Origin: Blastocladiella emersonii ATCC 22665
Lineage: Eukaryota; Fungi; Blastocladiomycota
DNA length: 64,000 nucleotides
Assembly (NCBI GenBank): GCA_025594325.1
Contig: JANHCV010000002.1
Location: 1,922,001-1,986,000, forward strand
Direction of reading: 5' to 3'
Each line of letters begins with the position of its first letter. Positions within the stretch are counted from its first letter, which is position 1. The notes beneath the pieces were generated by a model, which was not told the origin of the DNA, did no database searches, and was given only the letters and a program-made list of their open reading frames with translations. The translations under genes were made by a program, and so were the position numbers. Positions 15,795 through 64,000 of the stretch are shown piece after piece.

Positions 15795-17126
15795 TTACTC
15801 TTCCTTCTCAATCGGCTTAGAGATCAGGGCTCGGACCGCGCTGCACAGCAGCTCGTCAAACTCGGCCTCGCCCGTTTGGACCATGAGATGCTTGAGGTCG
15901 GCCCAGTTGGGAAGCCCTGCGTCGCGCCAAAACTCGGTCACAGGCGGGTACATGCGCTCGACCGCTTGTGGGATCCCCGCTCCCGTATATTTGAGCTCGA
16001 GCCCCGACCGGCGCCACCACCAGAGGACCCGGTCGCTCCCGTTGGCCGTGGCATCGTCCATGGCCGCCGCCGTGTACTTGAGCGGGAGGCCCGACGTGCG
16101 CCACCACTCGAGGCGCGCGATGATCTGCTCTTCGCGTTGATGCGGGAGGCACACGTCGATGGCGGCCTCGGTATACGTGAGAATCGCAGGCGGGAGGTTG
16201 CGCTTGAGCCACTCGAGGCTCTGGACCGCGTTTTCCTCGCTCGCCGAGTCAAAAAGCGGAGGCTCGTTCTTGAACCTGTCCATGGCCCACGCCGGACGGT
16301 CAAACGGAACAACCTTGGCGATCCAGTCCAAGCTCGCGGTCTGGTTGTGCTTGACGGCGCCGCGGATACAGCTCGACCACCGCACATTGTTCTTGACGCG
16401 GGCTGGCCAGCGACGCAAACAATGCTCAAGCTTCCCAATGTCGCCCTCGCGGCACGCGCGCTCGATCATCTCGGCAACGGCCGCTGGGGAGCCCAACTTG
16501 GCCACAGCGCCGCGGTTTGCACGGCACCAGTCAAGGATGGTCGAGCTGTGGCGCTGCAGAGCGAGGTACTCCACCTCGTCCACGTCAAACCAGTGGCCCG
16601 CGTCGAGGAGCCACTGCAGCACACTCGTTCGCGAGGTTATAGCGATGCGATCGAGGATTTGGCAAGTAATGTTGATTTCGAGTCCCGACACGTGCCACCA
16701 GCGGAGCACGACCATCTGCCCGCTCGCAATGGTTGCTTCGAGCTCGAGACTGCCAAAGTGCACGGGAAGCTTCGATTTGTGAAGGAGCCAGTCCAGGAGC
16801 TTGACTCGACCCGCCGAAAAGGACGGAATCACGTCGGCGCTGGTGAAGTTGAGGTCCGATCGTTTACAGTATCGGGCGTACGCGCGAGCAAGCTGCAGAT
16901 TGCCTGCCCGCAGCGCGCTGGCGAATGGGAAGCCCTCGATCTGCCTGAGCAGTTGAAGTTTGTAGCTGTGCCGCTGCACGACCTTCTGCAGCACCGTGAG
17001 GCCGGGTTTGACGCGGGTGTAGACTTCTGGCCGCTTGGTCCGCCAGTCGGCCATAAATGCAAGGACCAGGACGTGCTCGACGAGCTCGTGGGCAAGCCGC
17101 GGAAGGGGTTGCGCTTTTGCGTTCAT
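15795..17126 (-). CDS. Array A copy 1: F-box-like N-terminus plus ankyrin-like (V/L)LxWW..SGL repeats, 443 aa, intronless
   Basis: LPRLAHELVEHVL at the N-terminus; repeats LEWWRTSGLPLKYT and VLWWWRRSGLELKYT shared with five neighbours. Confidence 0.8.
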   Translation of the reverse strand: MNAKAQPLPRLAHELVEHVLVLAFMADWRTKRPEVYTRVKPGLTVLQKVVQRHSYKLQLLRQIEGFPFASALRAGNLQLARAYARYCKRSDLNFTSADVIPSFSAGRVKLLDWLLHKSKLPVHFGSLELEATIASGQMVVLRWWHVSGLEINITCQILDRIAITSRTSVLQWLLDAGHWFDVDEVEYLALQRHSSTILDWCRANRGAVAKLGSPAAVAEMIERACREGDIGKLEHCLRRWPARVKNNVRWSSCIRGAVKHNQTASLDWIAKVVPFDRPAWAMDRFKNEPPLFDSASEENAVQSLEWLKRNLPPAILTYTEAAIDVCLPHQREEQIIARLEWWRTSGLPLKYTAAAMDDATANGSDRVLWWWRRSGLELKYTGAGIPQAVERMYPPVTEFWRDAGLPNWADLKHLMVQTGEAEFDELLCSAVRALISKPIEKEE

Positions 17127-17459
17127 CTGAGTGCATCAAGTCACTTTCATTGAAGGGTTTGGGAGGCGGAGAGAATGCATGCGTGCTGCGATCGGGTCTT
17201 CGAGGTCCGCCGCATCCCCCGTGGCGCAAGCACGGTCACATGAAATCGAGTCGCGTCTCTCACCGGTTGCGAGACAGTTTTCGCCCTTGCCGCGACAGGC
17301 TGCAGCAATCCTCATGAAATTAATAAAATAGTTTCTTGTGCCCTACTGCTCAACTCCATTCCGCTCGTTGTCGGTGTGCGTGCACGAAGACTGCAACTCA
17401 CTCCCTCCACTGCAACTCACTCATGCCATCACCGGGACGCCACATCAATTGTTTAATGA

Positions 17460-18767
17460 TTACTCCTCGCTCAATTCGTATCGTAAAGACTGAGCAGCCA
17501 CGAAGCACACTTCGCCAAACTCTTCATCGCACATCCGCGCGAAATCCTCCGGTCGCGCCCATCGCGGTAGTCCCGAGTCGCGCCAGAACTCGACGACGGG
17601 AGCATACCGGCGCTGCACAGCGTCCGCGATTCCCGCTCCCGAGTACTTGAGCTCGAGTCCAGAGTCCCGCCACCACGCGAGAACGCGGTCCCACGCGTTA
17701 GCTGTGGCCGCGTCCATGACCGCCGCCGTGTATTTGAGGGGCAACCCGGACTCGAACCACCAGTTTAGTTTCGCAAGGACCTCGTCCTCGAGATGGAATG
17801 AGACATTCGCGTCGAGCGATGCTTCCGTGTACTCGCGCGCAGCGGGCGGAAGCTCGCGCATGATCCAGTCAAGGCTTCCGAGCGCGTTGTGCTTGCTCGC
17901 GACGTCAATGAGATGCAGCGGCGCCCCGTCCTTGCGCGCGATCCAAGCCGGGTCGCTCACGGGGACCACCTTGGTCAGCCAGCCCGAGACCTTGAGCATG
18001 TTGTCCCTGGCAGCGCCGATCATACACGCAGTCCAGTCCAAGGTGACCAGCTTTTCGCGCCAATCGCGCAACCACACGTCGAGAACACGCGTCTGGCCGT
18101 TCCGACACGCGTTTCCCAGCGTCTCCGTGAAATCAAAGGTCGCGATGTCGTTGGCCTCGCACCAGCGAAGCACTCGGACGTTCATGCGCTCGGTTGCAAG
18201 GCGAGCAACGGGACCGAGGTCGCCCCGCAAGCCCGCGCCAATGAACCAGTTCAAGCAGTCAAACATGTCGCACTTGACCACCACGGACAAGGCCTCGTTC
18301 GTAAGCGTGATCTTGAGCCCGGAATGCTTCCAGAAGTTGAGAACACCAAACTGGCGATGAACGATGGCCGCGTTCAGCGCGCGGCCATCGTAGTGAACGG
18401 GCAGTTTTGACTCGGTGAACAGCCACTGAAGCACATCCAGGCGGCCGCCAGCACACGCTGGAATCAGGTTCACGTCGCTGTACTCGAGATCGGCCAGTCT
18501 GCAGTACTTGACGTAACGCTTCATCAGCTCGAGGTCGCACATCTTGAGCGCCTGATCAAAGGTCATGAACAGCAGCTTCCGACGCGTCTCGAGCTTGTAA
18601 CTCCGCTGGTACACGAGCTTGTGCAGGATCGAGAGACCAGGCGCCACGCGGGTGTACGCGTTGGGCGTCGTGGTCGCCAAGTCGGTCAGGAAGGCGAGCG
18701 CAAGAATGTGCTCGATGATCTCGATCGGAAGCTTCAGTTGCATCAACTTCATGGTGGTTTCCTTCAT
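17460..18767 (-). CDS. Array A copy 2, about 435 aa
   Basis: LKLPIEIIEHILALA; same repeat architecture; open frame. Confidence 0.8.
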   Translation of the reverse strand: MKETTMKLMQLKLPIEIIEHILALAFLTDLATTTPNAYTRVAPGLSILHKLVYQRSYKLETRRKLLFMTFDQALKMCDLELMKRYVKYCRLADLEYSDVNLIPACAGGRLDVLQWLFTESKLPVHYDGRALNAAIVHRQFGVLNFWKHSGLKITLTNEALSVVVKCDMFDCLNWFIGAGLRGDLGPVARLATERMNVRVLRWCEANDIATFDFTETLGNACRNGQTRVLDVWLRDWREKLVTLDWTACMIGAARDNMLKVSGWLTKVVPVSDPAWIARKDGAPLHLIDVASKHNALGSLDWIMRELPPAAREYTEASLDANVSFHLEDEVLAKLNWWFESGLPLKYTAAVMDAATANAWDRVLAWWRDSGLELKYSGAGIADAVQRRYAPVVEFWRDSGLPRWARPEDFARMCDEEFGEVCFVAAQSLRYELSEE

Positions 18768-18887
18768 GGTGTATACATGGTTTGGTGGAGCGAGAGAGCA
18801 AGTGGATCAACTGTTCGATCAGGCCGCCAGCAGCAAATTGTCTCCCGCTCGCGATCACAGCCAACATCAAGCACTTCATCACTCACT

Positions 18888-20249
18888 TTATTCTTCCACA
18901 TCGTCGCTGAGCTGATACGCCAGATTCTGCATAGCGAACAGACACGTATCGCTCAACTCCTCGTCGCTCGTGCGGACCATGTCCTCAGGCCTGCCCCAGC
19001 GCGGTAGCCCCGATCCGTTCCAAAACTCGAGGACCCCTGCGCGCCCGCGGTGGACGGCTTCGGCGACGCCGGCACCGCTGTACTTGAGCTCGAGGCCCGA
19101 GTCGCGCCACCACCGCAGCACGCCGTCCCACCCACACGCCGTCGCCTTGTCCATGGCCTCCGCCGTGTACTTAAGAGGCAGGCCCGACTGCTTCCACCAC
19201 TCGAGCCGGGCAATGATAGGGTCGTCGTACGTGTAGCTTTCTGCATCGTCAAGCGACGCCTCCGTGTACTCGAGCGCAGCGGCGGGCAGGTTGGCCACGA
19301 GCCATGCGAGAACCCCGACCGAGTTCTGCTTGCTGGCCACGTCGACCAGGCGGCGCGGGGTCCCGTCGGCCTTGGCCGACCACGCGGGATGGTCGACGGG
19401 GACCACGCTCTTGGCGATCCAGTCGAGCACCTCGACGCGGTCGGAGTTGACAGCGGCCACGATGCCCTCGGACCAGTCCTTGGCGCGCATCTCGGCGGGG
19501 AACTCGCGGACCAGCAGCTGCAGGCACTCGAGGGCGTTGTTGCTGCACGGGTACTGGAGGCTGATGATGGTTGGGTCGAAACTAATCCCGTTGGCCTTGC
19601 ACCACGTGAGGACGTCGAGCTGCTTATGGTCGGCGGCCTTCTGGACGACGGATCCGGCCTTGTGCGCGAGCCCAGCATCGACAAACCACTGGAGCACGTC
19701 GATGCGGCCCCACGCCGCCGGGTTGCCCATGGCATCGTCCGAGCACCGGAACTCGAGTCCCGAGTTGCGCCACCAGTCGAGCACCGCCATCTGGCGCTCG
19801 TGCGAGGCGCGGTCAACGGCGCGCTCCGTGTACTGCATCTCGAGTCCCGAGTCGCGCCACCACTGCAGCACAGCGACCCGGCCATGCGCACTCGCCTCCT
19901 CGAGCACGCGCTCGTCGTAGTTGAGCCGGACCCCCGAGCCCCGCCACCACTCGAGGATGTCGACGCGGCCGTCGCGCGCGGCTAGGGATATGTCAAAGCA
20001 GGAGCAGTTGAGCTGCATCGGGTCGCGGTACCGCACAAGTCCGCGAAGGAGCGGCAGGTTGCGCTTTCCCATCGCCATGGATAGGCTCAGTGGCATCGAG
20101 TGCTTGAAGACGAACGCTCGCAGGCGATGCAGCCCGGGTGCGACGCGCGTGTAGCGCGCAGGGACCGCGGTCCACTTGTCGACCCAGAAGGCCATGATGA
20201 GGATCTGCTCGATGACCTCGAGCGGCAGTCTTGGTAGTGCAAGCTCCAT
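18888..20249 (-). CDS. Array A copy 3, 453 aa
   Basis: LPRLPLEVIEQILIMA; repeated GRVDILEWWRGSG, VLQWWRDSGLEMQYT and VLDWWRNSGLE. Confidence 0.85.
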   Translation of the reverse strand: MELALPRLPLEVIEQILIMAFWVDKWTAVPARYTRVAPGLHRLRAFVFKHSMPLSLSMAMGKRNLPLLRGLVRYRDPMQLNCSCFDISLAARDGRVDILEWWRGSGVRLNYDERVLEEASAHGRVAVLQWWRDSGLEMQYTERAVDRASHERQMAVLDWWRNSGLEFRCSDDAMGNPAAWGRIDVLQWFVDAGLAHKAGSVVQKAADHKQLDVLTWCKANGISFDPTIISLQYPCSNNALECLQLLVREFPAEMRAKDWSEGIVAAVNSDRVEVLDWIAKSVVPVDHPAWSAKADGTPRRLVDVASKQNSVGVLAWLVANLPAAALEYTEASLDDAESYTYDDPIIARLEWWKQSGLPLKYTAEAMDKATACGWDGVLRWWRDSGLELKYSGAGVAEAVHRGRAGVLEFWNGSGLPRWGRPEDMVRTSDEELSDTCLFAMQNLAYQLSDDVEE

Positions 20250-20660
20250 GGTTGCTGAAATTTACATGCGCGAGGCGGTCGAGGGAGAGAGAAAGGGGCA
20301 GCGGGGTTCTTGTACCCGTGAAGCTGTGACGCACCGACTTGTCTCCAGATTTTTGGCTCCGTCGCCGCCACGTGGTTACGCCACAGTGTCTCACAGCATG
20401 TCGCACACCCACCCGACGCGTCGAATGGTGGCGCGAGAGCCGCCACGTACGGCAGGTCAATCAAAACAGTCGAATTATCGCGGGATTCTGCGGCGCGACT
20501 CGCACGGCGCGTGGGGCGCCTCAGATCACTCCAAGGATCACGTCTGAATGCGATCAAACGATTTGATTCGAGCGCAGGCGATGCTCTTCCTCGTTAGCAT
20601 AACTGAAAATGTTTATTAGGTGTGTGTATATTCTCTTTCAATGCTCGCTTCCGCAACAAG

Positions 20661-21855
20661 TCAGGGCTCCAAACCCTCGAGCTCGAGGCCCGAGTTGAAC
20701 CACCACTTGACGACCTTGGACCACCTGCGCGCCGTGACCATGGCCAGCGCGACCGCCGTGTACCTGAGCAGATGCCCCGACTCGCGCCACCAAGTGAGCC
20801 GTTCCAGCACCATGTCCTTTTGATCGTCATCATCGTAGTCTTCGAGCGCCGCCTCCGTGTAGCCGCGCGACTCGCGTGTGAGGTTCTTGCGGATCCACTC
20901 AAGACTCCGGAACGCGTTGCTCTTGCTCGCCGCGTCCATGAGATACTTGGGCGTCCCGTCCTCGTTCTGGGCCCAGATCGCGACGTCGACGGGAAAGAAC
21001 TCGGTCAAGCAGTCCAGGGTCCTGGTGTTGTTCGACTTGACAGCGATGCGGATGAGATTGTCCCAGTTCATGGTGATGAGCTGTTCGGACCGATTCTTCC
21101 ACCAATCCTTGAGCTTGCTGACGTCGCCGACCTCGCACGCGGTTTCCAAGGACGCGTACAGGAGGTCAAGCGGGGCGCCGTGGTCCATGCACCACCGGTA
21201 AACCTTCATGTCCTCGTACCCGGACGCGAGCAGAGCCCATTCCACAATAAGCGCCTTGATTGAGAGCCCGGCGTCGACGAACCAGTCAAACACGTCCGTG
21301 TTGGAGTGCGCGAGCGCAATATACTGCATCCGCTTTGTAATCTTGATCTTGATGGCGGGGTCCGGCCGAAGCTGCTTCACTCGGAGCCACCATTTGAGCA
21401 CATGGAGCCGGTTGAAGAAGATGGCTTCCTCGACGGCACGTTCGCAGTAGAGTATCGGAAGCTCCGACTCGTCGAGTCGGAAGCTCCGACTCGTCGAGGA
21501 GCCAGTCGAGGACGTCCACCCGACCAGCTTCGCATACAGGGATCAGGGACGCGGCGTCGTACTGGAGATCGCACGGCTTGCAGTACGCCTTGTACTCGTG
21601 CAGCAGCAGCAATCTGTGCTCAGAAAGCGCTCGATCAAATGGCATCCACTCAATCTTCCGGCGAAGCTGCGCCTTCAAGCTGCGCTGGCGTACGAGTTTG
21701 CGGGCGACCAGCAGGCCGGGCGCGACCCGCGTGTATGCGTCCACTGAGGTGCCCCGCAGGTCGGACTTGATGGCAAACACGAGGATGCGCTCGATGAGCT
21801 CGCGCGAGAGCCTCGGAAGCGGTCGAGCCGGCTCGTCGTCCATTTGCTTATGCAT
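20661..21855 (-). pseudogene. Array A copy 4, frameshifted by a 22-bp tandem duplication
   Basis: ORFs 21286..21855 and 20661..21401 are in different frames. Removing one copy of TCGGAAGCTCCGACTCGTCGAG restores LLDESELPILYCERAVEEAIFFNRLHVLKWW. Confidence 0.8.
21455..21498. repeat. Perfect 2 x 22-bp tandem duplication
   Basis: 21455-21476 is identical to 21477-21498. Confidence 0.95.
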
Positions 21856-22036
21856 ATATCCAAGCCGGGCAGCTGGGAGGGAGAGAGGGGATTGGTCCGG
21901 CGGCTGGTCGCACTGAAGCCCGCGCTCGCCACACTCCTTCTGACTCGAACGCGCATGGTAACGTCGAAAAATTTATTCATCGCGATACGGAATCACACAT
22001 CGTAGTGCGGAGAATGCATCCGCTGCGCGCGAGAGT

Positions 22037-23365
22037 TCAGGGCTTGGCGACTCCTGGCTTCTTCACCATGCCCATCAAGTCCTTGGCCTTGGTCCAGAGC
22101 GGCAGCCCCGAGTTGACCCAGAACTCGACCACCTGCGGTCCCTTGGACGTCTCGCGCAAGGCGAGCGGGACGCCGGCGCCCGTGTACTTGAGCGGCAGCC
22201 CAGAGTCGCACCACCACTGGAGCACCTTGACCCACCCGTGCCGCGACGCCGTGTCCATGGCCACGGCCGTGTACTTGAGCGGCAGGCCCGACTGCTTCCA
22301 CCACTCGAGCCGCATCACCACCAAGTCCTCCTCGTTGTTCGAGAAGCTCGAGTCCATGGACGTCTCCGTGTACTCGAGCGCCTCGTCCGGGAGATGCGCC
22401 ACGGCCCACTTGAGAACGCTGATCGCGTCGTACTCGCTTGCCACGTCGAGGAGGCGACGCGGCGTTCCGTCGCTGGCCGTGGTCCACGCGTCGTCGTCGA
22501 CAGGTACGACGCGCGTCGCGATCCAGTTGAGCAGGTTGGCGCGGTTGCGTTCAACCGCGGTCCCGATGGCCGCCGACCAGTCGTGTGTGCGCACCGAGTC
22601 GGGGAACTCGCGGAACCAAAAGTCGAGGCTCGCGATGGCCTCGTTGCCGCACGCGCCGTCGAGCGAGACGGCGGCGGGATCGAGCGGTAGACCGTTCGCC
22701 TTGAACCACTCGAGGATGGCGGCGTGGTTGTTGTCGGTGGCCCGCTGGACGGCAGTACCGAGCTTGAGATCAAGGCCCAACGCGAGGAACCACTGGAACA
22801 CCTCGAGGTTGCCGCGGGCCGCCGCCTCGCCCAGGGCGTCGTCCGAGTACCAGTTCGTGAGCCCCGAGTCGCGCCACCACTGGAGCACAGGGATGTAGCA
22901 CCGAGTCGCGGCGCCGTCGCCCGCACGCTCCGTGTACCGCATCTCGAGTCCCGAAGCGCGCCACCAGTCGAGGACGTGGACGTGGCTGTTCGCGCTCGCC
23001 TCGTCCAGAGCCGATGCATCATACAAATTGTGGCGGCCCGACTCGTGCTGCCACCACTCGTGCAGGTCGATGCTCCCACTCCCCGCAATGCACGCCGTGT
23101 GGGCTTCGATGAACTCAAAGTTCCCGCTCGGCCCGCGGTAGCGCAGCAGCGCACGGAAGAGCGGCACGTTGCAGTTGCGGATCGCGCGAATCGTGGTGAG
23201 CGAGTGCGAGTACAGCATCACGGCGCGCTGCACGCGGTCCAGGCCCGGCGCAACGCGCGTGTACGAGGCCGGATCGCCCCACCGGTCGGCCATGAAGGCG
23301 ATGATCAGGATCTGCTCGGTGAGCTCAAGCGGTAGTTTCGGCAGTGGGCGATCCATGGTTTTCAT
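22037..23365 (-). CDS. Array A copy 5, about 440 aa
   Basis: MKTMDRPLPKLPLELTEQILIIA; same repeats; open frame. Confidence 0.85.
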   Translation of the reverse strand: MKTMDRPLPKLPLELTEQILIIAFMADRWGDPASYTRVAPGLDRVQRAVMLYSHSLTTIRAIRNCNVPLFRALLRYRGPSGNFEFIEAHTACIAGSGSIDLHEWWQHESGRHNLYDASALDEASANSHVHVLDWWRASGLEMRYTERAGDGAATRCYIPVLQWWRDSGLTNWYSDDALGEAAARGNLEVFQWFLALGLDLKLGTAVQRATDNNHAAILEWFKANGLPLDPAAVSLDGACGNEAIASLDFWFREFPDSVRTHDWSAAIGTAVERNRANLLNWIATRVVPVDDDAWTTASDGTPRRLLDVASEYDAISVLKWAVAHLPDEALEYTETSMDSSFSNNEEDLVVMRLEWWKQSGLPLKYTAVAMDTASRHGWVKVLQWWCDSGLPLKYTGAGVPLALRETSKGPQVVEFWVNSGLPLWTKAKDLMGMVKKPGVAKP

Positions 23366-23575
23366 AATTTTTTTTTTCGTGTCAAAAGAGGAGGACTGGT
23401 CAAGGAGTTTTTCCCTCAATCATGTGGGCGACCTGTTCAAGGCCGCGCTGCGCCACAATTCACCTGCACGTGGTGCCTCGCAGCGCACGCGTTCCAAGGT
23501 CGAGTCTGCGCGAAAGGCTTGACCAGTGTCCATGTCAAGAGAATAAGGCTGAGAGCAAAACCGATTCGCCAAAAT

Positions 23576-24943
23576 CTATTCATCGCTGAGCTGGTACTGC
23601 AACCCCATTGCGGCCTTGAAGCACGCTTCCGCGACCTCCTCCTCCTTGGCCCTGCGCATCACGTCCTCGGCCTTGGCCCAGTTCGGGAGCCCCGAATCGA
23701 GCCAGGCGTTGATCGTCTCGGCGCCGCGCCACGTGTCGGTGAGAGCACGCACGACGCCCGCGCCCGTGTACTTGAGCTCGAGGCCCGACTTGAACCACCA
23801 CTCGAGCACGCTGGCCCACCCTTCCGCGGTGGCGCCGTCGATGGCGGCGGCCGTGTACTTGAGCGGGAGCCCCGACGCGCGCCACCACTCGAGCCGCGCA
23901 ACCACCTTCTCCTCGTCACAACGGTTGTTCTCGTCGAGCGACGCCTCCGTGTACTCGAGCGCGGCGGCGGGCAGGTGCGCGACGAGCCAGTCGAGCACCG
24001 CGACGGCATCGTGCTTGCTCGCGAGGTCGAGCAGGCGGCGCGGGGTCCCGTCGTCCTGGATCGACCACGCGGGCTGGTCGACGGGGACCACGTTCTTGGC
24101 GATCCAGTCGAGCACGCCCGCCGAGTCGCGCTCGACGGCGGACCCCATGGCCGAGGCCCAGTCGCGCGCGCGCACCGGGGCGGGGAACTCGCGCAGCCAA
24201 AAGTCGAGCGCCGCGATAGCGTCGCTGCCGCACGCGCCGTCGAGCGAGATGGCGGCGGGGTCGAGCGGGAGGCCCTTGGACTTCATCCACTCGAGGACGG
24301 CGGCCTGGTTGTGGTCGGTAGCCTTCTGCGCGGCGGTCTCGAGCTTGAGCTCGAGGCCCGAGTCGAGGAACCACTGGAACACCTCGAGGTTGCCGCGCTC
24401 GGCCGCCTCGCCGAGCGCGTCCTCCGTGTACAGGACCTCAAGCCCCGAGTCGCGCCACCACTGCATGACGGCGATCCGGCCCTCGCGCGCGGCGCCGTTG
24501 AAGGCCTCGCGCGAGTGGCCGAACGGCAGCCCGGACTTCTTCCACCAGTCGAGGACGGGCACGTGGCCGTTGATGCTGGCGTAGTTAAGCGCCCACCCGT
24601 CGTGCATGTCGGGGCTGCCCGACTCGTGCAGCCACCAGTCGAGCATGTCGACGCGCCCCGCCGCGGCAATGTCGTTCGTGTACCCCGAGTAGTACTCGAT
24701 CTTCTCGCCCGGTTTGCACGCGCGCACCATGGCGCGCAGGAGCGGCAGCTGGCCGTCCCGCACCGCCACGTAGCTCGACATGCGGCGCAGCGCAACGCGG
24801 CGCAGCCGGTTCAGGCCCGGCGCTACGCTCATGTACGCGTACGGGTCCGACGCCCACGACTCCTCGCTCGTCAGCGCGAGGATCAGGATCCGCTCGATCA
24901 GCTCGAGCGGCAGGCGCGGGATCGTCGGGGTGTCTAGTTCCAT
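23576..24943 (-). CDS. Array A copy 6, 455 aa
   Basis: IPRLPLELIERILILA; same repeats; TATATAA at 25010-25016 upstream. Confidence 0.85.
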   Translation of the reverse strand: MELDTPTIPRLPLELIERILILALTSEESWASDPYAYMSVAPGLNRLRRVALRRMSSYVAVRDGQLPLLRAMVRACKPGEKIEYYSGYTNDIAAAGRVDMLDWWLHESGSPDMHDGWALNYASINGHVPVLDWWKKSGLPFGHSREAFNGAAREGRIAVMQWWRDSGLEVLYTEDALGEAAERGNLEVFQWFLDSGLELKLETAAQKATDHNQAAVLEWMKSKGLPLDPAAISLDGACGSDAIAALDFWLREFPAPVRARDWASAMGSAVERDSAGVLDWIAKNVVPVDQPAWSIQDDGTPRRLLDLASKHDAVAVLDWLVAHLPAAALEYTEASLDENNRCDEEKVVARLEWWRASGLPLKYTAAAIDGATAEGWASVLEWWFKSGLELKYTGAGVVRALTDTWRGAETINAWLDSGLPNWAKAEDVMRRAKEEEVAEACFKAAMGLQYQLSDE

Positions 24944-52823: not shown

Positions 52824-55768
52824 TCACTCGGCTGCTTCGTCATCGCCAGACATGCCCGACGCGACCCATCCGACGCCGCTAAACGGCCATTGGGACGCCT
52901 TGCTACCCGTCCCGGTCATAGGGAAGGAGAAGTCAAAGGCAGGGGGTTCGGCGAACGGCGAGCCCGTAAACGCGATCGACGGTCTGAAGCTAGGTTGTGG
53001 CATTGGTTGGTACGTGAGATCCCCACAGGCGTTGTGACACGGCGTGGTTGATACGAGCGGGGCACCGTGCGAGTTGAGCGTGGCGATGATGGTGTTGAGC
53101 GCCGTAACAGAAAGGCCAGGATAACGCTCAAATTCGCGCGCAAGTCGCGGCTGGAGGTGCGAGGGAGGGATCTGCGAGACGCTTGCGACGAAAAGTGATG
53201 GAGCAGGCTGTGAAGCAGACAAGAACGAGGCGGGCCTCTCACGCGAGGAGGTCGCTGACGGTGACCCCGGAGTCAAAGCGAGAGAGGCAAAGTCAAAGTC
53301 GAAGCTGAGCGCGGCGGTTGCTGGCAAGGAATGCGAATTCCGTGATCCACAATCGTTGAGGCTAATCTCAGCAATAGACCTGTCGATACCGCCCGCAGTC
53401 TTCTCGCGCTCTTGCAGCATCCAGCGAAGGTAGAAGGCGAGTTGCAAGGGCGTGAGCTGGCACTGCTTACCATTCGCGGATCTGGCGCGGGAGCGGCGAG
53501 ACGCATTCGAAGACCGCGTTGAAAGGGAAGAGACGCTGCAGTAACGAACGTCATGCTCGCCAATCGATGGGCTAGCGCCACCTTCGTCAAGTAGCAACGC
53601 GACCATTTCCGAGTCGGCGTTCAGGATCGCCTGAGCGAGCGGGGAGCGCTCCACAAACGACCGCCGCGGCATGAAGTTAACGGTGATCACAACCGAGTGA
53701 TCAAGACCAAGATCGGGCAATGCGCCGTGGCGCAGTAGAAGCCGGACGATTTCGTAGTCGCGGCGCGCGACGGCGCGGAAAAGCGGGTTTGAAAGCTGCG
53801 CAAACAAGCGGTCCGTCAAGTCAATCTCGCCGTTGAGCTCAAGCTGCTCGGTGGTAAACGGGACTGAAAGAGGGGACTTGGTGTTGAGAACGAGATAATC
53901 GCTGTCCAGGAAGCCCTGTAGATTCATTGACACGGCCTAGTCATGCGACACGTTGGATTAGTTACCCGCGTTCAGAGGAAATGCGTTTAACGTACGTTGA
54001 GCGAAACATCAATGGCCGTGCCGCGCAGTCCAGCGGGACGGTCTATCTTGGACGCACGCGCGACGTGCGGGATCAAGGCCTCGAAGTGGGCTGCGTCGTC
54101 GCGCGTCATAAGTGTCGAAATGACAAGGGTGGCCATGATCGCAAACGGCGTGTGCATTCCACGAGTGAGGAGATCCACAATAGCGGGATGGTCGGTTCCA
54201 ATCGTCAGCAAGGCGAGATGGACCGGACACACCCCATCCACGTCGTACACGTCAGATCGCGCACCACCTGCAAGCATCTCGCCAAGTAGTGGGTCCCAAT
54301 AGTCGGAAGTTTCGTCGCGAGCGAGTAAAATGTGAAGCGGTGATCGGTACTCGAGTTCAGCCTGTACGGCAGTTGAAAGTTGAGCGGTTGCGTTCCACGG
54401 GATCACAACATCGGCTCCGTACCGCGCCCGCAGCACGTCAAGAATCGTCACAGCAATTTCGTCCCCGCGCGAAACAGCACAACAAAGTGCGTAGTAGGCA
54501 CCGTCGCTTGACTCGTCAGCGTCCGTAGCATCGTTCGAGATTGGGCACCCAAGGACTGGCGCGTGAGAGAACCCAGGAATTGTAAGCGGGGCACCGAATT
54601 CGACGGCGAGTACACGGGCGAGATCGGATTGACCGCGCTCGACAGCGCACAGAAAGTAGGAGCGGTGCGGCGCGCCCTCTGGAAAGTGGCGCCAGCAGTT
54701 GTGAGCGATTACAAGGTTCCGCGAGCGAAAAGCTGGGACAAGAAGGCGCACGAGTTCGATCCAGTTGTCATCAATTGCGATGTCAAGTGCAGTGGTCGGA
54801 CGAGTTTTGGTGCTGGTGCTGGTGCTGGTGCTGGTGCTGGTACTGGTCGGGCGCACGAGCGGGATACCCGCGCCGAGCAAGCGCTGCACCATGTCGAGGT
54901 TGCGGTAGCGAATGGCAAACGTGAGAAGGTCGCCCTGACTATACGAATCCGAGAGGTACTCGTCAGGCAGCAGGGCATTCGCCGTTGGCAAGGCACAGTC
55001 CGTCAGAAGCCAGTCGAGAATATCGCGCACATCGTAACGGATGGCGAAAAACATGAGGACGGCTACAGCAGCACCGTGGCGTGCGGGGTCAGCAGGTAGT
55101 AGCCGCGCGCCCATCTCGTCGACGAGGATGCGCAAGATTTCGAGCGATCGCGACTCCATGGCCGAGGCGATAAGCGAGGGTACAAGCTTAGACTCGAGCG
55201 GACCGTTGACAAGAGACGCGGCGTGGCAAGCGTGGCGGGTGTAGACGAGCACGCGCAGCATGTCCACGTTCCCGCGCGTGACGGCGATGCGTAGCGCGCT
55301 GGTTGGCCAACGGTCGTAAGATCCCGGGACTCGAAATGTGTGCGTAGGCTTCGCTCCAGCCGCAACGAGGATACGCGCAGTTTCAAGCTGGTTGGCGCGC
55401 ACAGCATGGATCAAGGGCGGAGCTGCGTCTTCGACGTAATGCGGCCGAACGTTGGGTGAAGGTACCGCGTCCAGCAGCTTGCGAACCATGGACACGTTGC
55501 CCGACGCGGCGAAGCAGCAGAGAGCGCTTGTGCGATCGTTGCACGTCGGGTAGAGCACTTTGAGAGGCAGCGCATCGTCGATAGCGGCGCGCGCTCCACG
55601 CGATACGGAGCGCAGAGTAGAGCGGTCCTCTGTCGCAAGGAAGCGGATGCACAGCAGTTGCCACACGGGATCGACGTGGGCGAGGTCGAGGAGGGTCAGT
55701 GCATTTGGAGCGACTAGCGACGGCGGTTCCGTGCTCGAGTTGTCTTCATTAGTTTGCATCAAGTTCAT
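52824..55768 (-). CDS. Array C copy 2, intact, 961 aa: F-box-like + ankyrin repeats + FxF-motif disordered tail; complement join(52824..53936,53996..55768)
   Basis: LLDLAHVDPVWQLLCIRFLATEDRSTLRSVSR; ankyrin motifs PPLIHAVRANQLETARILVAAGA, TALDIAIDDNWIELVRLL and PLFRAVARRDYEIVRLLLRHGA; phase-0 GTACGT..CTAAT..TAG intron. Confidence 0.85.
54810..54846. repeat. (TGCTGG)n microsatellite encoding STSTSTST in C2
   Basis: About six hexamer units visible. Confidence 0.8.
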
Positions 55769-56019
55769 TGAGTTGATTGTGCCGATATGTTCGAGGGGGG
55801 GGGGGCGCGGGGGAGGGAGAGAGGAGACCAGTCCGCCGACGCAGCGGGCGACGTCGCATGCTCCGAGCAGACACCTCACGTGTAAGTCTTTTCTCGACGC
55901 GTTGCTCATCGATCTGCGGAGCAGACCTCCCCTCTCACCTCGTTGAAGTGTCCTTGAGAAAAATTCAATATCAATTCATTTAGAACGAGCTACACGCCCT
56001 TCTCTGACGCAACCGATGC

Positions 56020-57559
56020 CTACAACGCTGCCGCGTCACCAAACACAGCCGCCGTCCCCGCGTCACCAACCGTCGGCCACTGGAACGCCCCAGCAAACGA
56101 GGTCGAGGCGTCGCCCGAGCGGCCACCTGCTGTTGCGCGAGCAGTTGCAGCTGAGAACTCGGATGCTGCCGCCGCCATATTCGACAAGCGCGCGCGCTTG
56201 GCCCCGTTGGGCCTGCTGCTGGCCTCGGGTCCAGCGACTGCTGCCGGCAGTCGAGTTGCTGCGGCCGAGTATTTGCCGATTGGAGTTACAGCGATGCGAA
56301 TCGGCTGGTTCGGATCACGGCGCGACCACAGCAGGTCCATAACTCGGCTGGTAAACGGTGCCCCGGGGATCGTGAGCGGCGCGTCGAACTCGGTGAAAAG
56401 CGTGTGGATGAGATCAGTCGAACCATTTTCGACGGCGCATTCGATGTAAGGATGAATCACACGTTTCTTCGTCGTCCTACCACGAGGGCAGGTGTGGCGG
56501 AGCGTGTGACTGCGTGAGCGAAAAGCGGGAACGAGAAGCCGCACCAGGTCAACGCGATTCGTGTCGACAGCAATATCAAGTGGCGACGGGACTTGCTTGC
56601 TGAGTTCCGAGTCAAGCGGACGCGTAAGTGGTAGATCGGTTGCAAGAAGGCGGCGGACGATGCCGGTGTTGCCGCGGCGGGCGGCCAGTGTGAAGATTTC
56701 GTCCCCACCGAACCAAGCGTATGATAGTCCGCTGGAAGCTGGAGACCGGCCGTCGGAAGCGCACACTTGGAGATCAGCCAGTCCAGAACGGCGAGTGCGT
56801 CGCGTTGAACAGCAAGTGCAATGAGAATGGCGGCCGCGTCGCAACGCTCGGCGCGCTTGAGAGGGAGAATGTGCAGCGCCCATTTGAACGAGCTGGCGCA
56901 AAGTGTCGACGGAGCGCGACTCGATGACTGAGTGGACAAGCGAGCGGCGTAACTTGGTTTTGGGTTTAATGACGGGACTATTGACAAGGCTCGAAGCATC
57001 TTCGGTGTGGCGAGTGAAGAGGAGCACGCGCAGCATGTCAACGTTTCCGCGCATGGCGGCAACGTGCAAGGGAACCATCGAGCGTGTGTCGATAAGCTCG
57101 CGACTTCCCGCCCTGTTTCCCGTCGACCTGGTAGGCCGTGCGCCGGCGGCGACGAGGACGCGCGCCGCCTCGACATGGTCGCCACGAACAGCGCGAAGCA
57201 GCGCCGAAGTTGGGTCGAAAGGCTTACGAATCTCCGTATCAGCTGAAGTCCCCGTAGAGAGCAGCTCACGAAGCTTGGGAGCGTCGCCCGATGCTGCGAA
57301 GCCGTGGAGCGCGCGTGCGGGCAGCTCCCGAATGATACGGTTTGGTGATCGGGAGGGCGTCGATGGCGGCATGCGTGAATCGCGAGGCAGAGCGAAGTGC
57401 GGTGCACTCCTTGGGTCTGAGGTAGCGCATGCACATCGGCCGCCAGACGGGAGCAAGTTGCGCAAGATCAAGCAGGGTCGGCGCTCTCGGAACCAACAGC
57501 GCCGGCGGCGGCGGCGCTGCTAGTGCCGGATCGGCTTCATTAGATTGCATCAAGTCCAT
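56020..57559 (-). pseudogene. Array C copy 3: frameshift near 57320 and an internal deletion removing the intron and middle of the gene
   Basis: MDLMQSNEAD..LLDLAQLAPVW then a frame change; APLTIPGAPFTS is fused directly to the exon-2 tail RVMDLLWSRR. Confidence 0.75.
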
Positions 57560-58018
57560 GGCGGGAACAGTGAGAGGAGTCCCTTCGAGTGAGCATGTTG
57601 AAGGAGAAAAAGCGGTCGCCAGCCAGGGCGGCGGCGGTGCTCATCGCCTGCCCCGCTAGCGCCGGCTGCCTTTCTCCTGCAATGAAACTCGATGCAGATG
57701 CATCCAAACTGTCTCTATGCTGTCAGCTTCGCGATGAGTGGAGAGGAAGCGAACGGGGCGACGCCGCGGCCACGACTCGTCTGTGGGTTCCTCACCCGCT
57801 TCATCGCCTCGTCGAACGGCGCTACCGCGTCGGCCTCAAGCAGGGGTGCCCCGAGCGGGAACCGACGGGGATGCCCTGCGTGAACGAGTCGATCGGCGAG
57901 GCCCCATGTCGCATGTGTGAAGGTGCCGTCTGATGAGCGCGACGCCCAAGGGCCTCAGGAGGCACCTTGCTGAGAAGCCATATAGCGATGAAGATGTGAG
58001 CTATGTATTCGCGCTATC

Positions 58019-61000
58019 CTACTCGGTCGACGGCGACGCGACGGACATGCTCAATTCGGCCGCTTCGCCCAACATCGCCGCTTTCTCCTCGCTCTTGGCC
58101 GCAGTAGGCCACTGAAATGCGCCAGCGAACGACGCACCAGCAGCCGTCGTCGTCGATCGAGATGCCGCGGCCGGCGGAGCCATGGCGGAGAAGTTGAAGG
58201 TGAACGAGGGACGGGCAGGCGGTGCACGCTCGGGCTCGCGTGACGCGGGCTCAGCGTCAGCTGCTGCCGCCGCGGACCCGCCTACTGAGCTGCTTGAGGT
58301 AATAGTATGGTCCGGGGCCGCCTTGCGCGACTCGTGGCGAGACCACATGAGATCCATGGCCTGCTTGCTCACAAGGTGGCACGGCAGCGCAGTCCAGGTG
58401 AGCGGCGCGCTGTGTGCGTTAAGCGCAGCGATGATGGAGTCGAGAACGTCGAGAGTGAGCTGCGGGTAACGGTCGAGCTCGCGAGCGAGACGCGGTTGGA
58501 GGTGCGCGGGCGGGACCACAGCAGGGATCGATGGGGTCAAGGCGGACGCGCTGCGCGGTGCGCCGCTAGGCGATGAAGTCGCCAAAGGCGGTGTCGGAGC
58601 AGAAGCAGAGAAGTCAAAGCTGAACGAAGGAGCCATCGCCGCCGGCGGGATGAGAGTAGCCGGAGCGACGGGTCCCTTGATCGCGAAGGGGACCGCGGAC
58701 GGGGTCGTCAGCGCGTTGCCGCCGGCCGCCTTGTCCCGCTGCTCCAACGCCCAGCGCAGATAAACGGCAAGCTGCAGCGGCGTGATCCGGCACTCGCGTG
58801 CCTGCTTTCCATTTGTGCGGTGGGTGCGGCGATGTGAAAGCGACGACGAATGAGTTGAAGACGCATGACCGTCACACCAGCGCGAATCGTGTTCGCCAAT
58901 GAACGAGCTCGCGCCGCCCTCATCAAGAAGCAACGTAACCATTTCCAGATCGCCGTTGAAGATGGCCTGCGCAAGCGGCGACCGTTGAACAAACGACCGG
59001 TAGTTGAAGCGTACAGGTGCAGGGTGCGAGAGGAAGGTTGAGCACGATGCACGGAAGGCTGAGGAGATGACGGAGACGGTGATGGACACGGCGAAGGAGG
59101 TAGACGCAGAAGGGAGGAAAGGGTGTATAATGACGGCTAATAGTAGCAGCGATCTAGAACAAAACCAGAGGGAGCGGAGATGCTCGCTTGAGGTGAGCGT
59201 GCGACCCTGCGGCGAGGCAGTCCGCCGGCGGTGACTGGAAGTGTGGCGCCGCCGGCGCGTGCCACTCGCGTGATTGCCCGACGCGTCTCTCGCGGTCGGG
59301 CCAGCGTGCGCGTGTGTACTTGAACTCCGGTGAGGCTTCGCGTCATGGACATGGTTGTTGAGTCCGACGTTCGGCAGCGCGGCGTGGTCAAGCAGAAGCC
59401 GCACGGTCGCGTACTCACGGCGCGCAACAGCGCGGAAAAGCGGGGTCGCAAGCTGCGTGAAGTAAGGGTCGGTCAGGTCCACCTCGCCGTTGCTCTGAAG
59501 TTGTTCAATGGTGGCAGGCGCGCGTGCTTCCAGTGCGCGGGCGTCAAGGATCGGGTACTCGCCAGCTGGGAGAACGCGGAGCCAGCCAGGGACGGCCTAC
59601 CAACCCACGAATATCAACGTTAGTGCGCATCATGAAACGTATAGAAGCGAACCGTACCAGGAGCGGTACATCCACAGCCGTGCCGCGCCGCCCAGCAGGC
59701 CGATTGACCTCGGACGCGGTTGGGACGTGTGGAAGCAGCGCCTCAAGTTGTGCGGTGTTGCCCTTGACCGCCGCGGCTGTGACGAGCGCTCCCATGGTGG
59801 TGAAGGAAGTGCACATACCACGCGTAACGAGCTCCGTAATTGCTGGATGGTCAATCCCGATCGACTCTGCCACTAAATCAAGCGGGTAGAGGCCTTCCAA
59901 GTCGCGCACATCGGAACGCGCGCCCTCGACCAACATCTCGTCGAGCAGTGGGCTCCAGTTATTGTAAGCTTCGTGGTAGCGAGAGAATAAGAGGTGGTGG
60001 AGCGGCGTGCGATCGTACAGCCGCACCCGTAACGTCCCCGAGAGCGTGGGAGACGCGTTCCATGGAATTTGCACGTCGGCGCCGTGTCGCGCCCGTAGTG
60101 CGTCAAGGATGGGCGTGACAAAAGAGCGGCCCTGGGACACGGCACGGTACAGCAGGTAGTAGGCGCCGTCATGAGACGCATCGGCAATCGTTGTGTCGTT
60201 GGAGACAGGACAGCCGAGCACTGGAGTAAATGTAGTTCCACGGATCGTAAGCGGGGCATCGAATTCAAAGGCGAGCGCGCGAATGAGATTGGGCGAGCCA
60301 AAGTCGATGGCGCACGTCGCGTACGAGGGACATGGCTGCTTGGGCTGAGGGCACGTGTGTCGGACGGCGAGACCGCGGGCACGGAAAGCTGGAACAAGTA
60401 GGCGCACAAGATCGATACGGTCCCTGTGGATTGCGACGTCGAGTGGCGACAAGGCGTATTTAGTGGAGACATCAGGAATCCAGCGAACGAGCGGGAGGTC
60501 GGTCTCGAGCAAGCGGCGGAGTATGTCCTTGCGGTTGCTGCTGCGAGCGGCGAAGGTAAGAATGTCGTCGCCATCGAACTAGGCGGTGCAGTGCTTTTCC
60601 GGGAGGTAAACATCTGTCGTCGGCAGCGCGCACTTGGTCAAAAGCCAGTTGAGAATGGCGGACGCGTCGTGTTTGACCGCAAGCGCAATGAGAATGGCGG
60701 CGGCGTCCTTGTGCTCGGAGCGTTTAGGCGGGAGAAGCCGCGCACCCAGCTGGACGAGAACACGCAAGAGTTCGACGGAGCGCGACTCGATGGCCAAGTG
60801 GACAAGCGAGCGCCGCAGTCCGGTCGCGGGCTCGACAACCACGTGGTTGACCAGGGACGAAGAGTGTGCAACGCCCGCAGCATCGACAAGCGCGCGTAGC
60901 ATGGTTATGTCACCCCGCAGGGCGGCGACGTGCAACGGGACGGCCGAGCGCGGGTCGGCAATCGCAGCGACAGGAGTGCCCCGGCCAGGCCTCGCGCCCG

Positions 61001-61415
61001 CCTGAACGAGCACGCGTGCCGCTTCGACGTGGCCGTTGCGGACCGCATGGATCAGGGCCGGAAGCTCCGTAGTAGTACCAGCAGGGCGGAGGTTGGGCGA
61101 AGGCAATACAGCAAGCAGCTTTCGAAGAAACGCGACGTTGCCCGACGCCGCAGCGCTGCCAAGCGCAAAAGCGCGGTCGGCACGCGACGGAATGACCTTG
61201 TCGAGAGGAAGAGCGTCGATGGCATCGCGAGCGGCGCGCGATAAGAGACGCATCCTAGCGCGGTGCTTGGGCGCAAGGTACCGGAGGCACAAGGGACGCC
61301 ACACGGGGTTGACATGGGCGAGGTCGAAGAGCGAGAGGGCCGGAGCGGCGGCAGACGACAAAGACGGCTCCGGTGCTTCTGCAGCTATACATGGTGATGA
61401 TTGCATCGAGTTCAT
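58019..61415 (-). pseudogene. Array C copy 4: TAG at 60579-60581, intron 59597-59657, and an in-frame insertion of about 320 bp in exon 2
   Basis: HCTA*FDGDDIL versus C3 YAWFGGDEIF; frames on both sides of the stop agree; exon 2 is open. Confidence 0.8.
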
Positions 61416-63041
61416 GGTGATGAGGTGCTCCATATAGCGGATGGGGAGAGGAGCGAAAGAACAGCCCACGTTCCCGCTCAGCTTTCACCAGCCATCACAT
61501 GATCGCACGGTGTGGCGCAGCGCGTTGCTGGCGCATATTGCCAGTACCTCCACCACTCACTCCGTTCGGGTGTCAACTGTGCGGGGCTTTGCCCAAGTGC
61601 CCTCTCGCCGCGATCACAGGGCACTCCAGACGCGTCGTGGACGCGCGATGCAAGGAACTGCATGATTTGTGAACTGAGAGACACGGAACTCGCTTCAGAT
61701 GTAGTGCAGACTGAGATCATGCTTCTGACTCGCATTACTCAAAGGGGCTCGAAAGGAAGAGTCGCGACGCGTCAGAACCACGCGTTGGGGCCTTCGCAAC
61801 ACGCCTTCTTTGCGCTTTTGTGCGTCTCCCTGCTCTTGAGGTGGATCAAGTCGACTACGGACGTGGCGGAGATAGCTGAAGGTCGCTGAACGCATCGTTG
61901 TTCAAGTTGCGGGAGCGACTCCTTGTGCAGCGAGTTGCGATCAAGCGCGCACAAACACGAACTGGCTCTAGTGATGGTGGCTTTGATCGAGCGCTAGCGC
62001 GACTTGATTGTGGGCGCTGATTACTCTCAACATCGCCTCAATGCAGCATACGCGCACGTAGCGCGCATCGCCAGCGCGCTCGAGGCAATTGAGATCGGAT
62101 TTCTGACAGACGCGTCAAGGCGAGCCACTCGCTCACAGCAGCATGCTGATATTCTCAATGAGCCGAAAAGGAAGTAGTCAGCGATTGAGCAACGGAGCGT
62201 ACTATGCACAGCGAATGTGCGCGACGACTCGATCTCGACTAACGCATCGATCTTCCGCCAAGAAAGCACTCAACGATGATGGCGTTCGCGTCGCACGCTA
62301 TGATCCAGCTTGAAAGCTCGAGCGAGCTCGCCTCCTTTGGCGCGGAACAACATATAGCGACGCCTGGCGGGCGCAAAGCGGGTGTAGTAGCGGTAGCAGC
62401 GGCCAAGAAGAGCGAGTGCGCCCACACAAGGGGAAGAACGAGAACACAAATAGCATCGCCCCGAGCTGGGGTCCTTCACAATGGCAGGTACTGCAAGCCG
62501 TGGCGACGTGAAAGCATCCCACAACATGCTACTCCACTCAGCGAGCTCGCCTAAGCAGCACTTGTGCAGTAGCAAGAGCAGAGTGCAAAAGCGGTGCCGG
62601 CGGAACACTCAAGTCAACGGCCGAGTCGAGCACAGCACGTCGCGGTGCGAGCGCCACCCAAAGGCGCCGAGGTGGGATAGGACCGGCGTGTCGTCGATTT
62701 CATGATTTATGGAACCCATTGCATAGAGTAAGTGAGCTTCATTGAGTGGGGGTGCATACGGGAGGGGTGCAGAGCGGAAGCGAGAGCCGAAGCGAAGTGG
62801 CGCAACGCGACACGGGGAGTGATGTCATTGAGAAAAGTTTGACTGTAACGTGACGAGCGTTAGCCAGAAAATCGCGGTCACTATAGCTTGGGCAAAGCCC
62901 CGCACTGTCTCAAGCCTCGCCCAAATCCATGGTTGAAGAAAAACGACGTGTCACTTATTGACTGCCCCCGCAAAGGACCGCTACGCTTTAAAGTTGTTCA
63001 GAAGGTTAAGCAAAGTCATCGTTAATTCATCATCAGCCGAG

Positions 63042-64000
63042 CTACACGCCATCCTTGGATGCAGCCGATGCCGCCACCGTGTCCACCTCATCAACCGCCG
63101 CTGTCGGTTCAGCTCTGTCCTTGGTTGCCGCTGGCTGGTTGGAGGACCCGCCAATGGACGTTGCAAAACCAGAGAGGTTTTCCTGATTCCCGCTCGCCGT
63201 CGCCGATGTGCGAGCCGTCGTGGCAGAAAGGGCAAATGCGGAAAAGTCGAAAGCGGACGGACGAGAAGAGCGATGCGCCATGGGTCTGGGCCTGCGTAGC
63301 GCGGGATTGGTAGCAGATGCCGCAGCGAATGACGCCATGGTCGCGGGCCCAGCACCTCGGGTCGACTTGACGAAGCGACGAGCGGGACGCAGAACCGGCT
63401 TGCGCGGGTCATGCGTGCGCTGGAGCGCCGGAGTGGTGGTGACCTCGGGCTCAGCGGCGACGGCAGTTACCGCAGTGATCGCTGCAACTGACTCGTTCGC
63501 CGCGGAGGAAGTATCGAGAATTGGCTGATTGCTATCGTGGCGCGACCACAGCAGGTCCATAGACTGGCTCGACACGAGGTGGCACGGCAGCGCGTTCCAA
63601 GCAAGCGGCGCGCCGTGCGTGCAAAGGGTAGCGATGATGGTGTCGAGCAAGTCGATGGTCAAGTTCAGATAGCGGTCAAGCTCTTGAGCGAGGCGCAACA
63701 GGATTTACTTGGGCGGCACCACGACAGGTATCGGCTCGGACGGCGTAGAATCGCGAGAAGCAAAGTCAAAGCTGAAAGCAGATGCCGAGGGGGCAGCGGG
63801 CAGGGTCGTCGTCGCGGAACTCTTCTTGGCCATGAACTGAACCGCAGGCGAGCGAGCTGCTTCGTTGCGACTCTGCAGCGCCCAGAGCAAGTATAAGGCA
63901 AGCTGCAAGGGCGTGATCCGGCACTCGTGCATTCCTCCAATACCAGTCGCGGCTTTTTGGACACAAGTTGTTGTGGCTGTAGCCGTAGCCTTGGACTGAT
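63042..64000 (-). pseudogene. Array C copy 5: exon-2 part only (5' end outside the window), with in-frame TAA at 63705-63707
   Basis: ECRITPLQLALYL..AFSFDFAS..VVPPK*ILLRLAQELDRY versus C4 VVPPAHLQPRLARELDRY. Confidence 0.7.

Follow-up and report, generated by a model that had tools for sequence, protein, structure and literature searches.

Do tandem gene arrays of the early-diverging fungus Blastocladiella emersonii encode a diversified set of F-box adaptors? The question arises from a window of 64,000 nucleotides on contig JANHCV010000002.1 of strain ATCC 22665, in which a 48-kb stretch holds three co-oriented tandem arrays (A, B, and C; Table 1). Our reading of the ORFs and genes bears out the three arrays and 16 gene copies described in the first-pass annotation. 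Taking frameshifts, stops, and deletions copy by copy, we arrive at the same count of disrupted copies (9 of 16); five of the six A copies are intact, as is a single copy in each five-gene array, B and C. The strong divergence among copies that had been described is seen in amino-acid identities of 37-56% in A, about 35-49% in B, and about 50% in C, and the paralogues within arrays are old. The arrays had also been called unrelated. This holds for their N-terminal profiles, which are not alignable, but a DNA element at the start codon is common to all three, and the arrays are thus not entirely unrelated.

Table 1. Coordinates of the arrays, gene copies, F-box-like segments, and shared DNA elements (window positions).
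Feature	Position	Strand	Description
Array A	15795..24943	-	six intronless genes A1-A6, 430-455 aa; ORFs, gene calls, Pfam
A1	15795-17126	-	intact intronless ORF
A2	17460-18767	-	intact intronless ORF
A3	18888-20249	-	intact intronless ORF
A4	about 20664-21840	-	broken: frameshift near 21540, C-terminus lost
A5	22037-23356	-	intact intronless ORF
A6	23576-24943	-	intact intronless ORF
F-box-like segment of A6, residues 8-57	24773..24922	-	alignments; AlphaFold model pLDDT 81
Array B	37116..49512	+	five two-exon genes B1-B5, about 700-800 aa
B1	from 37116	+	exon 1 mostly deleted or frameshifted
B2	from 39137	+	TAA at codon 5 (39149-39151), rest open; intron 40398-40462
B3	41672-44125	+	intact; exons 41672-43070 and 43131-44125, intron 43071-43130
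B4	from 44469	+	several frameshifts
B5	from 47036	+	frameshift; 100-codon insert 47675-47977; stop 49102-49104
F-box-like segment of B3, residues 8-50	41693..41821	+	alignment, language-model neighbours
Array C	51872..64000	-	five two-exon ankyrin genes C1-C5, about 960 aa, disordered tail
C1	52639 down to 51872	-	truncated; stop 52310-52312
C2	55768 down to 52824	-	intact; exons 55768-53996 and 53936-52824, intron 53937-53995
C3	57559 down to 56020	-	frameshifts and deletion
C4	61415 down to 58019	-	stop 60579-60581, plus insert
C5	runs off window, only 3' part inside	-	stop 63705-63707
F-box-like segment of C2, residues 26-68	55565..55693	-	Pfam PF00646, language-model neighbours
15-nt element ATGCAAWCWRATGRA at start codon (example)	41672..41686	+	eight matches
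Further 15-nt element starts	37116, 39137, 44469, 47036	+	
Further 15-nt element starts	55759, 57550, 17136	-	
Upstream two-box motif GACGCGW-N8-CAYRYG (example)	41541..41561	+	
Further two-box copies	39005, 44328, 46909	+	
Further two-box copy	17257	-	
Further two-box copy	59287	-	within C4 insert

Every copy has an N-terminal module within residues 5 to 70, followed in A and C by ankyrin repeats and in B by a large conserved body. The bodies are as the first-pass annotation had described them. In array A, an LP.LP.EL.E.IL segment precedes WW/SGL-type ankyrin (Ank_4) repeats, which exceed the Pfam threshold in A3, A5, and A6 (37-48 bits, cut-off 22.7); A1 and A2 have ankyrin scores below threshold, yet are clearly paralogous to the other A copies. 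The C bodies are true ankyrins (Pfam Ank_2 in C2, C3, and C4 at 53-67 bits, best 66.8, cut-off 27.3), and a word search for C relatives gave one weak ankyrin match among the matches listed. The B body matches no Pfam family, and a word search for its relatives returned no match. Five weak matches were detected among 1.84 billion representatives, all from B. emersonii and located on five other contigs of its genome; within this set, family B has relatives in no other species. No Skp1 gene is found near the two B relatives whose genomic context was inspected. No signal peptide or other secretion signal was seen in the array proteins, as noted before, and an N-terminal module followed by a repeat or interaction body, without a signal peptide, is an architecture that fits the reading as F-box adaptors.

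The best relatives of the A body are proteins of Zopfochytrium, Cladochytrium, and Rhizophlyctis (E 1e-73 to 1e-55), and a Powai lake megavirus protein is matched at E 5e-55. The Ank_4 (WW/SGL) proteins of chytrids and blastoclads have a body homologous to that of A, and many chytrid members carry a matching N-terminal LP.EI...I module, whereas the Megavirinae relatives have a different N-terminal domain without the LP.E module. A viral origin of array A was considered and seems unlikely, given the host-like G+C of its genes (about 0.60-0.65), the chytrid affiliation of its closest relatives, and the missing module in the giant-virus proteins.

The N-terminal motifs reported earlier for the three families were reproduced. 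A segment equivalent to A6 residues 8-57 opens every A copy, the B N-terminus reads L..LP.EL...VL.LA.PR...PAAS ahead of the orphan body, and C1-C4 have in common the motif L.DLA.V..VW..LC.R.L...D...LR.VSR, which is without the LP dipeptide and keeps the helix 2-3 pattern L...D...LR.VSR. In a six-frame translation of the window (128,000 residues), the pattern LP.[EDK][LIV]...[IV][LI] occurs ten times, nine of them at A or B N-termini; it is present in 9 of the 11 A and B copies, A1 and A4 having LA/LS variants of the LP motif. It had been cautioned that only the first F-box helix is evident in A and B. Conservation in fact covers about 40 residues, up to a near-invariant W in B, where the superfamily alignment has near-invariant L, P, V, L, A, P, L, V, and W over 39 residues.

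Comparison of the N-termini with F-box profiles gave matches that stop short of significance. PF00646 is the only Pfam family on the C N-termini, where it is detected in three of four copies (E 4.8e-4 to 0.02) and scores at best 19.7 bits (cut-off 20.5), over profile positions 11-40 of 43. The gathering score of the Pfam F-box families PF00646, PF12937, and PF15966 is reached by no array copy, and none of the window's A or B copies has a Pfam F-box match even at E 10. Among 32 chytrid relatives of A, PF00646 is found in three and PF12937 in three (best E 0.0014), the match spanning profile positions 1-27 only. The B. emersonii relatives of B match F-box at E 0.012, 0.037, and 0.55 and F-box_4 at E 0.15; scores for the A and B relatives are 12-19 bits, below threshold. 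F-box/F-box-like is the only Pfam family recurring on these N-termini and those of their relatives. The earlier proposal that the modules are F-boxes thus stands in that they resemble this family above any other in Pfam, but no copy passes the threshold.

Profile searches of 177,635 solved sequences with the B and C N-termini found no F-box protein, and solved-structure searches with A, B, and C N-terminal alignments and single sequences gave nothing significant, the top matches being Z-alpha, RelA, acyl-CoA dehydrogenase, and muramidase. When the A-type profile was enlarged from 22 to 32 sequences, the F-box of human FBXO22 moved from E 1.3 to 0.13; this best match is not significant, and its alignment is in register across all three helices. 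Comparison of the A, B, and C N-terminal profiles with hhalign revealed no significant link, the best result being the first helix of A and B (E 0.0023, probability 13%). In the same comparison, the B and C N-termini have only an MQ(S/T)(N/D)E leader in common.

For each family, the nearest protein language-model clusters are of the F-box type (C 0.91, B 0.88, A 0.82), at scores no higher than those at which chance matches are common. All ten neighbours of C are F-box clusters, and one identical 74-aa F-box cluster ranks first for each of the three families; these neighbours may simply reflect the LP.E motif from which the F-box idea arose. The AlphaFold model of the A N-terminus is helical, and its last helices are already part of the first ankyrin-like repeat. 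No F-box fold was recovered when it was compared with known structures by Foldseek and by VIA-align (wide search and second look): Foldseek gave E>4, FBXO42 scored Z 2.3, and the top of the wide search (Z 5.3) consisted of unrelated helical chains. The first row of an ESM Atlas shape search is a 'putative F-box domain-containing protein' (TM 0.48). The model of the B N-terminus (pLDDT 58) is unusable.

An F-box identity of the modules is plausible but an inference from these comparisons, as are binding to Skp1 and any part in a ubiquitin ligase. Taken as a whole, the locus is explained best, and with slightly better than even confidence, by diverged F-box adaptor families that would dock on Skp1. 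A true F-box is likely in C, leans towards yes in B, and is an even call in A. The arrays would then comprise three families of cytosolic, adaptor-type proteins that are specific to this lineage and arose by tandem duplication. Their helical N-terminal module (about 40-45 residues) is most likely an F-box that has diverged strongly, and it would bind Skp1 or a Skp1 paralogue. The body behind it would be a variable protein-binding part (WW/SGL ankyrin in A, orphan in B, classical ankyrin plus disordered tail in C), and each intact copy would serve as one of several interchangeable receptors for substrates of SCF ubiquitin ligases.

The N-terminal segments could instead be family-specific helical caps, or docking modules for another partner, that have converged on a likeness to F-boxes; a scaffold or adaptor role would still apply to the proteins, but not that of an SCF receptor. 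The subthreshold F-box scores, the A model without a structural match, and the lack of significant similarity among the three profiles all agree with such caps, and a segment whose last helices belong to the first ankyrin-like repeat could cap the solenoid. We consider this rather unlikely, as it gives no reason for one LP.E(L/I)...(I/V)L first helix to open proteins with unrelated bodies, and the F-box recurs in three independent families and their relatives, always in the same N-terminal place. A mere cap would also have no need of the strong constraint found in A1.

This constraint is seen by comparison with a 4.6-kb inverted duplicate of A1-A3 that lies 55 kb away and whose three ORFs are all intact. 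A1-A3 differ from it by a dS of 0.11-0.45, with a mosaic identity that resembles gene conversion; within array A, dS is 0.56-1.4. The dN/dS ratio, proposed earlier as a check, lies at 0.21-0.27 when A1 and A2 are compared with their duplicates; in A1 it falls to 0.06 at the N-terminus vs. 0.30 for the rest of the gene. In B, the first 60 columns of B2 and B3 are 50-52% identical, against 35% overall. Paralogues are still open although synonymous divergence is saturated. Purifying selection acts on the intact copies and is most pronounced at the N-terminus of A1. With pseudogenes beside intact copies, paralogues of different ages, and a recent duplicate, the region also shows the birth-and-death evolution that had been suggested.

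Lineage-specific F-box superfamilies of plants and Caenorhabditis are SCF substrate receptors that undergo tandem duplication, divergence, and pseudogenisation (PMC3030570, PMC8665587). The B. emersonii arrays are like them in having an N-terminal LP.E module of about 40-45 residues joined to a variable interaction domain, and in their tandem arrangement, divergence, many pseudogenes, and species-restricted members; they would evolve in the same way, through duplication, gene conversion, divergence, and decay. Unlike the plant and nematode proteins, the B. emersonii module passes no F-box profile threshold, the bodies are not of the usual LRR, WD40, kelch, FBA, or FTH types, the organism is an early-diverging fungus, and Skp1 binding is putative. 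We therefore regard the three arrays as a probable further example of fast-turnover F-box-type families and no new kind of system. Should the modules prove to be genuine F-boxes, B. emersonii would be a further lineage, next to plants and nematodes, with large, fast-turnover SCF receptor families. This mode of rapid turnover would then reach into the zoosporic fungi, and the B body would be a substrate-binding domain not recognised before. F-box, ankyrin, and ubiquitin families go unmentioned in the genome paper for ATCC 22665; new here are the purifying selection, the species-only B relatives, the A1-A3 inverted duplicate, and the shared 15-nt element.

Adaptors that combine an F-box with ankyrin repeats and hijack the host SCF include Legionella AnkB and the poxvirus ANK/PRANC proteins. 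They resemble the A and C proteins in joining ankyrin repeats to an F-box-type module, whereas they are pathogen effectors within a host cell, and the F-box-like PRANC of poxviruses is C-terminal while the array modules are N-terminal. Neither AnkB nor ANK/PRANC was matched in our sequence and fold searches, and the Legionella and giant-virus F-box-ankyrin proteins serve as analogies only. Host manipulation, proposed in the first-pass annotation, does not agree with the lifestyle of B. emersonii, a free-living saprotroph, or with the lack of a secretion signal, and we reject it. An intracellular defence role is pure speculation.

Two DNA elements are shared among the arrays. The 15-nt element has eight matches vs. 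0.33 expected, all at array gene starts and in families A, B, and C. The two-box motif has 12 matches vs. 4.4 expected and is common to A1 and B2-B5, upstream of the genes. Together, they point to a common regulation of species-specific gene families. They also bear on whether the region consists mainly of duplicates that drift without a current function, with the promoter boxes, the start element, and the N-terminal motif as remnants of a shared 5' module copied with new bodies. The 15-nt element in families otherwise unrelated in sequence, the promoter-like piece inside the C4 coding region, and the broken majority of copies, with B and C each keeping a single intact one, would be expected from such copying and decay. 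Purifying selection on A1 and A2, the three open duplicate ORFs, and paralogues that stay open at saturated synonymous divergence run against it, and the N-terminal protein motifs cannot be aligned across the three families and were therefore not recently copied from one module; we judge it improbable. A still bolder view, in which the arrays, the dispersed B relatives, and candidate extra SKP1 copies form one co-regulated, fast-evolving SCF recognition system, switched on via a common promoter (ACGCGT box and E-box) and the start-codon element for intracellular surveillance, e.g., against giant viruses with family-A-like ankyrin proteins, is very improbable. Diverged F-box adaptors remain our preferred reading. 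The 15-nt element is out of frame in A1 and conserved in the A1 duplicate, and the two-box motif forms a conserved island between the two.

Three tandem arrays, each with its genes co-oriented, are evident in the ORF lists and three-frame translations of the window (table below). These bear out the count of 16 genes, nine of them disrupted, made in the first-pass annotation, and the N-terminal motifs of A, B and C read as described there; the arrays, their motifs and their decay are confirmed. The array B introns (60-65 nt) have the form GTACGAC...TAG. Conserved genes (Clr2-like, MGM1 dynamin and Egh16-like) lie between the arrays, G+C is 0.56-0.75 throughout the window, and the arrays are not compositionally foreign.

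Features of the three arrays (window positions unless a contig stretch is named)
Feature	Position	Strand	Description
Array A	15795-24943	minus	six intronless genes, 430-455 aa; 5/6 open
A4	near 21540	minus	frameshift, C-terminus lost
Array B	37116-49512	plus	five genes, one short intron each
B1		plus	most of exon 1 lost
B2		plus	TAA at codon 5, remainder open
B3		plus	sole intact array B copy
B4		plus	several frameshifts
B5		plus	frameshift, in-frame 100-codon insert, stop
B5 insert	47675-47977	plus	~100 codons, in frame, missing from other B copies
Array C	51872 to window end	minus	five genes, one 59-nt intron
C1, C4		minus	one in-frame stop apiece
C2		minus	intact, 961 aa
C3		minus	frameshifts and deletion
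C5	cut by window edge	minus	contains stop
C tail motifs	52827-53300, 58022-58500	minus	short, Phe-rich
ATGCAAWCWRATGRA element, B1-B5	37116, 39137, 41672, 44469, 47036	plus	start codons
ATGCAAWCWRATGRA element, C2, C3, A1	55759, 57550, 17136	minus	start codons
Two-box motif	39005, 41541, 44328, 46909, 8121	plus
Two-box motif	17237-17257, 59267-59287, 15577	minus
A1-A3 duplicate	L001 (upstream stretch of the same contig, JANHCV010000002.1) 9908-14494, contig ~1,874,500-1,879,100; window 15787-20334	inverted
P0122 (H9P43_007187)	L004 (another contig) 10001-15104		annotated, 1425 aa

The proposal that these genes encode SCF adaptors is partly supported: no family other than the F-box keeps reappearing, and it does so in each of the three independent families and among their relatives, always at the same position. 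Each single test falls short of the accepted level. A true F-box is likely in C, is slightly favoured in B and is an even call in A. For the C N-termini, PF00646 is the sole family match, found in three of four copies below threshold (best E 4.8e-4 and 19.7 bits, the cut-off being 20.5; positions 11-40 of the 43-position profile), while the A and B window copies have no F-box match in the Pfam search even at E 10. The pattern LP.[EDK][LIV]...[IV][LI] has ten matches in the six-frame translation of the window, nine of which open A or B copies. Relatives of the A and B copies fare slightly better. Many chytrid Ank_4 proteins open with the A-type module (P.LP.EI...I...L followed by R.A..L.R), with a good alignment across ~40 residues; among 32 such relatives, three match PF00646 and three PF12937 (best E 0.0014), the matches reaching the first 27 profile positions only. 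The relatives of B share the module L..LP.EL...VLQLA.PR..V.AAS..L.......V...W and give F-box-like matches at E 0.012, 0.037 and 0.55 and an F-box_4 match at E 0.15.

Searches of the A, B and C profiles against sequences of solved structures gave no significant match. The F-box of FBXO22, aligned through all three helices, is the sole F-box protein to appear with the A-type profile, its E-value moving from 1.3 to 0.13 when the profile was broadened; none was found with the B and C profiles. Compared pairwise, the three N-terminal profiles show no significant similarity, and A and B have only the first helix in common (E 0.0023, probability 13%). Language-model neighbours place F-box clusters first for C (0.91, 10/10), B (0.88, 10/10) and A (0.82, 6/10), scores at a level that serves as a lead only; one 74-aa cluster tops all three lists. 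Of the AlphaFold models, that of the B N-terminus was too poor for use. The model of the A N-terminus is helical and confident (pLDDT 81), and neither Foldseek nor VIA-align found an F-box with it; by shape, the top ESM Atlas match is a 'putative F-box domain-containing protein' (TM 0.48). The sole usable structural test was either negative or insensitive.

Ankyrin repeats in A and C pass Pfam thresholds; those of array A are of the WW/SGL Ank_4 type, which has undergone expansion in chytrids, Catenaria and Megavirinae. The C copies end in a disordered tail with short conserved Phe-rich motifs (SFDFDF, FDFSF and FQWP). The unrecognised B body matched no Pfam family, and a word search likewise returned nothing. 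The B exon 1 profile retrieved five proteins only from 1.84 billion representatives (E 1.6e-12 to 4e-4), all B. emersonii hypothetical proteins on five other contigs. The B genes of the window are missing from this library and are therefore probably unannotated. P0122 comprises two tandem B-like units, each headed by an LP.EL N-terminal module, and is probably two adjacent genes fused by annotation.

The A1-A3 block has an inverted 4.6-kb copy ~55 kb upstream (88% identity), in which all three ORFs are open. By the Nei-Gojobori method, dN/dS between A1 and its duplicate is 0.27 overall and 0.06 in the first 60 codons (3 non-synonymous and 13 synonymous changes); it is 0.21 for A2 and 0.59 for A3, whose 3' half is near-identical. 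Near-identity of the A3 3' half and the A2 5' half between window and duplicate forms a mosaic that suggests gene conversion. Within array A, dS is 0.56-1.4 and dN/dS 0.4-0.7. B2 and B3 are 50-52% identical over the first 60 columns and 35% overall. Given the open duplicate ORFs, the dN/dS values and the B2/B3 identity, the intact copies are constrained genes, and these sequence comparisons indicate that the N-terminal module ranks among their most constrained parts.

Plants and Caenorhabditis offer well-documented cases of F-box superfamilies that are arranged in tandem, turn over fast and include many pseudogenes (PMC3030570, PMC8665587); F-box gene expansions are likewise documented in amoeba-associated Chlamydiae (PMC4209131). 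If the F-box reading is right, the locus would extend this list to another lineage, and its bodies would be unusual. The array families go unmentioned in the B. emersonii genome paper. We found no evidence for either of the two suggested roles, intracellular defence and host manipulation, and the latter is at odds with a free-living saprotroph lifestyle.

The 15-nt element ATGCAAWCWRATGRA has eight matches in the window (0.33 expected), all at array gene starts and usually with (A/G)ACTTG before it; degenerate versions occur at C1, C4 and A2. In B and C it is in frame and codes for a common leader, LMQ(S/T)(N/D)E, whereas in A1 its first ATG lies 10 nt 5' of the ORF ATG and in another frame. 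It occurs in three otherwise unrelated families and, given this difference in frame, is probably a DNA or RNA signal rather than a protein motif. Its identity in the A1 duplicate, where sequence between conserved islands has diverged, suggests that it is constrained as DNA or RNA. TGATGCAA resembles a bZIP composite site. A rigid pair of an MluI-type box and an E-box-like box, GACGCGW-N8-CAYRYG, lies upstream of A1 and B2-B5 (twelve window matches, 4.4 expected). It sits ~110-130 nt before array genes, as it does before two other ORFs, and the C4 exon 2 insert also contains a copy.
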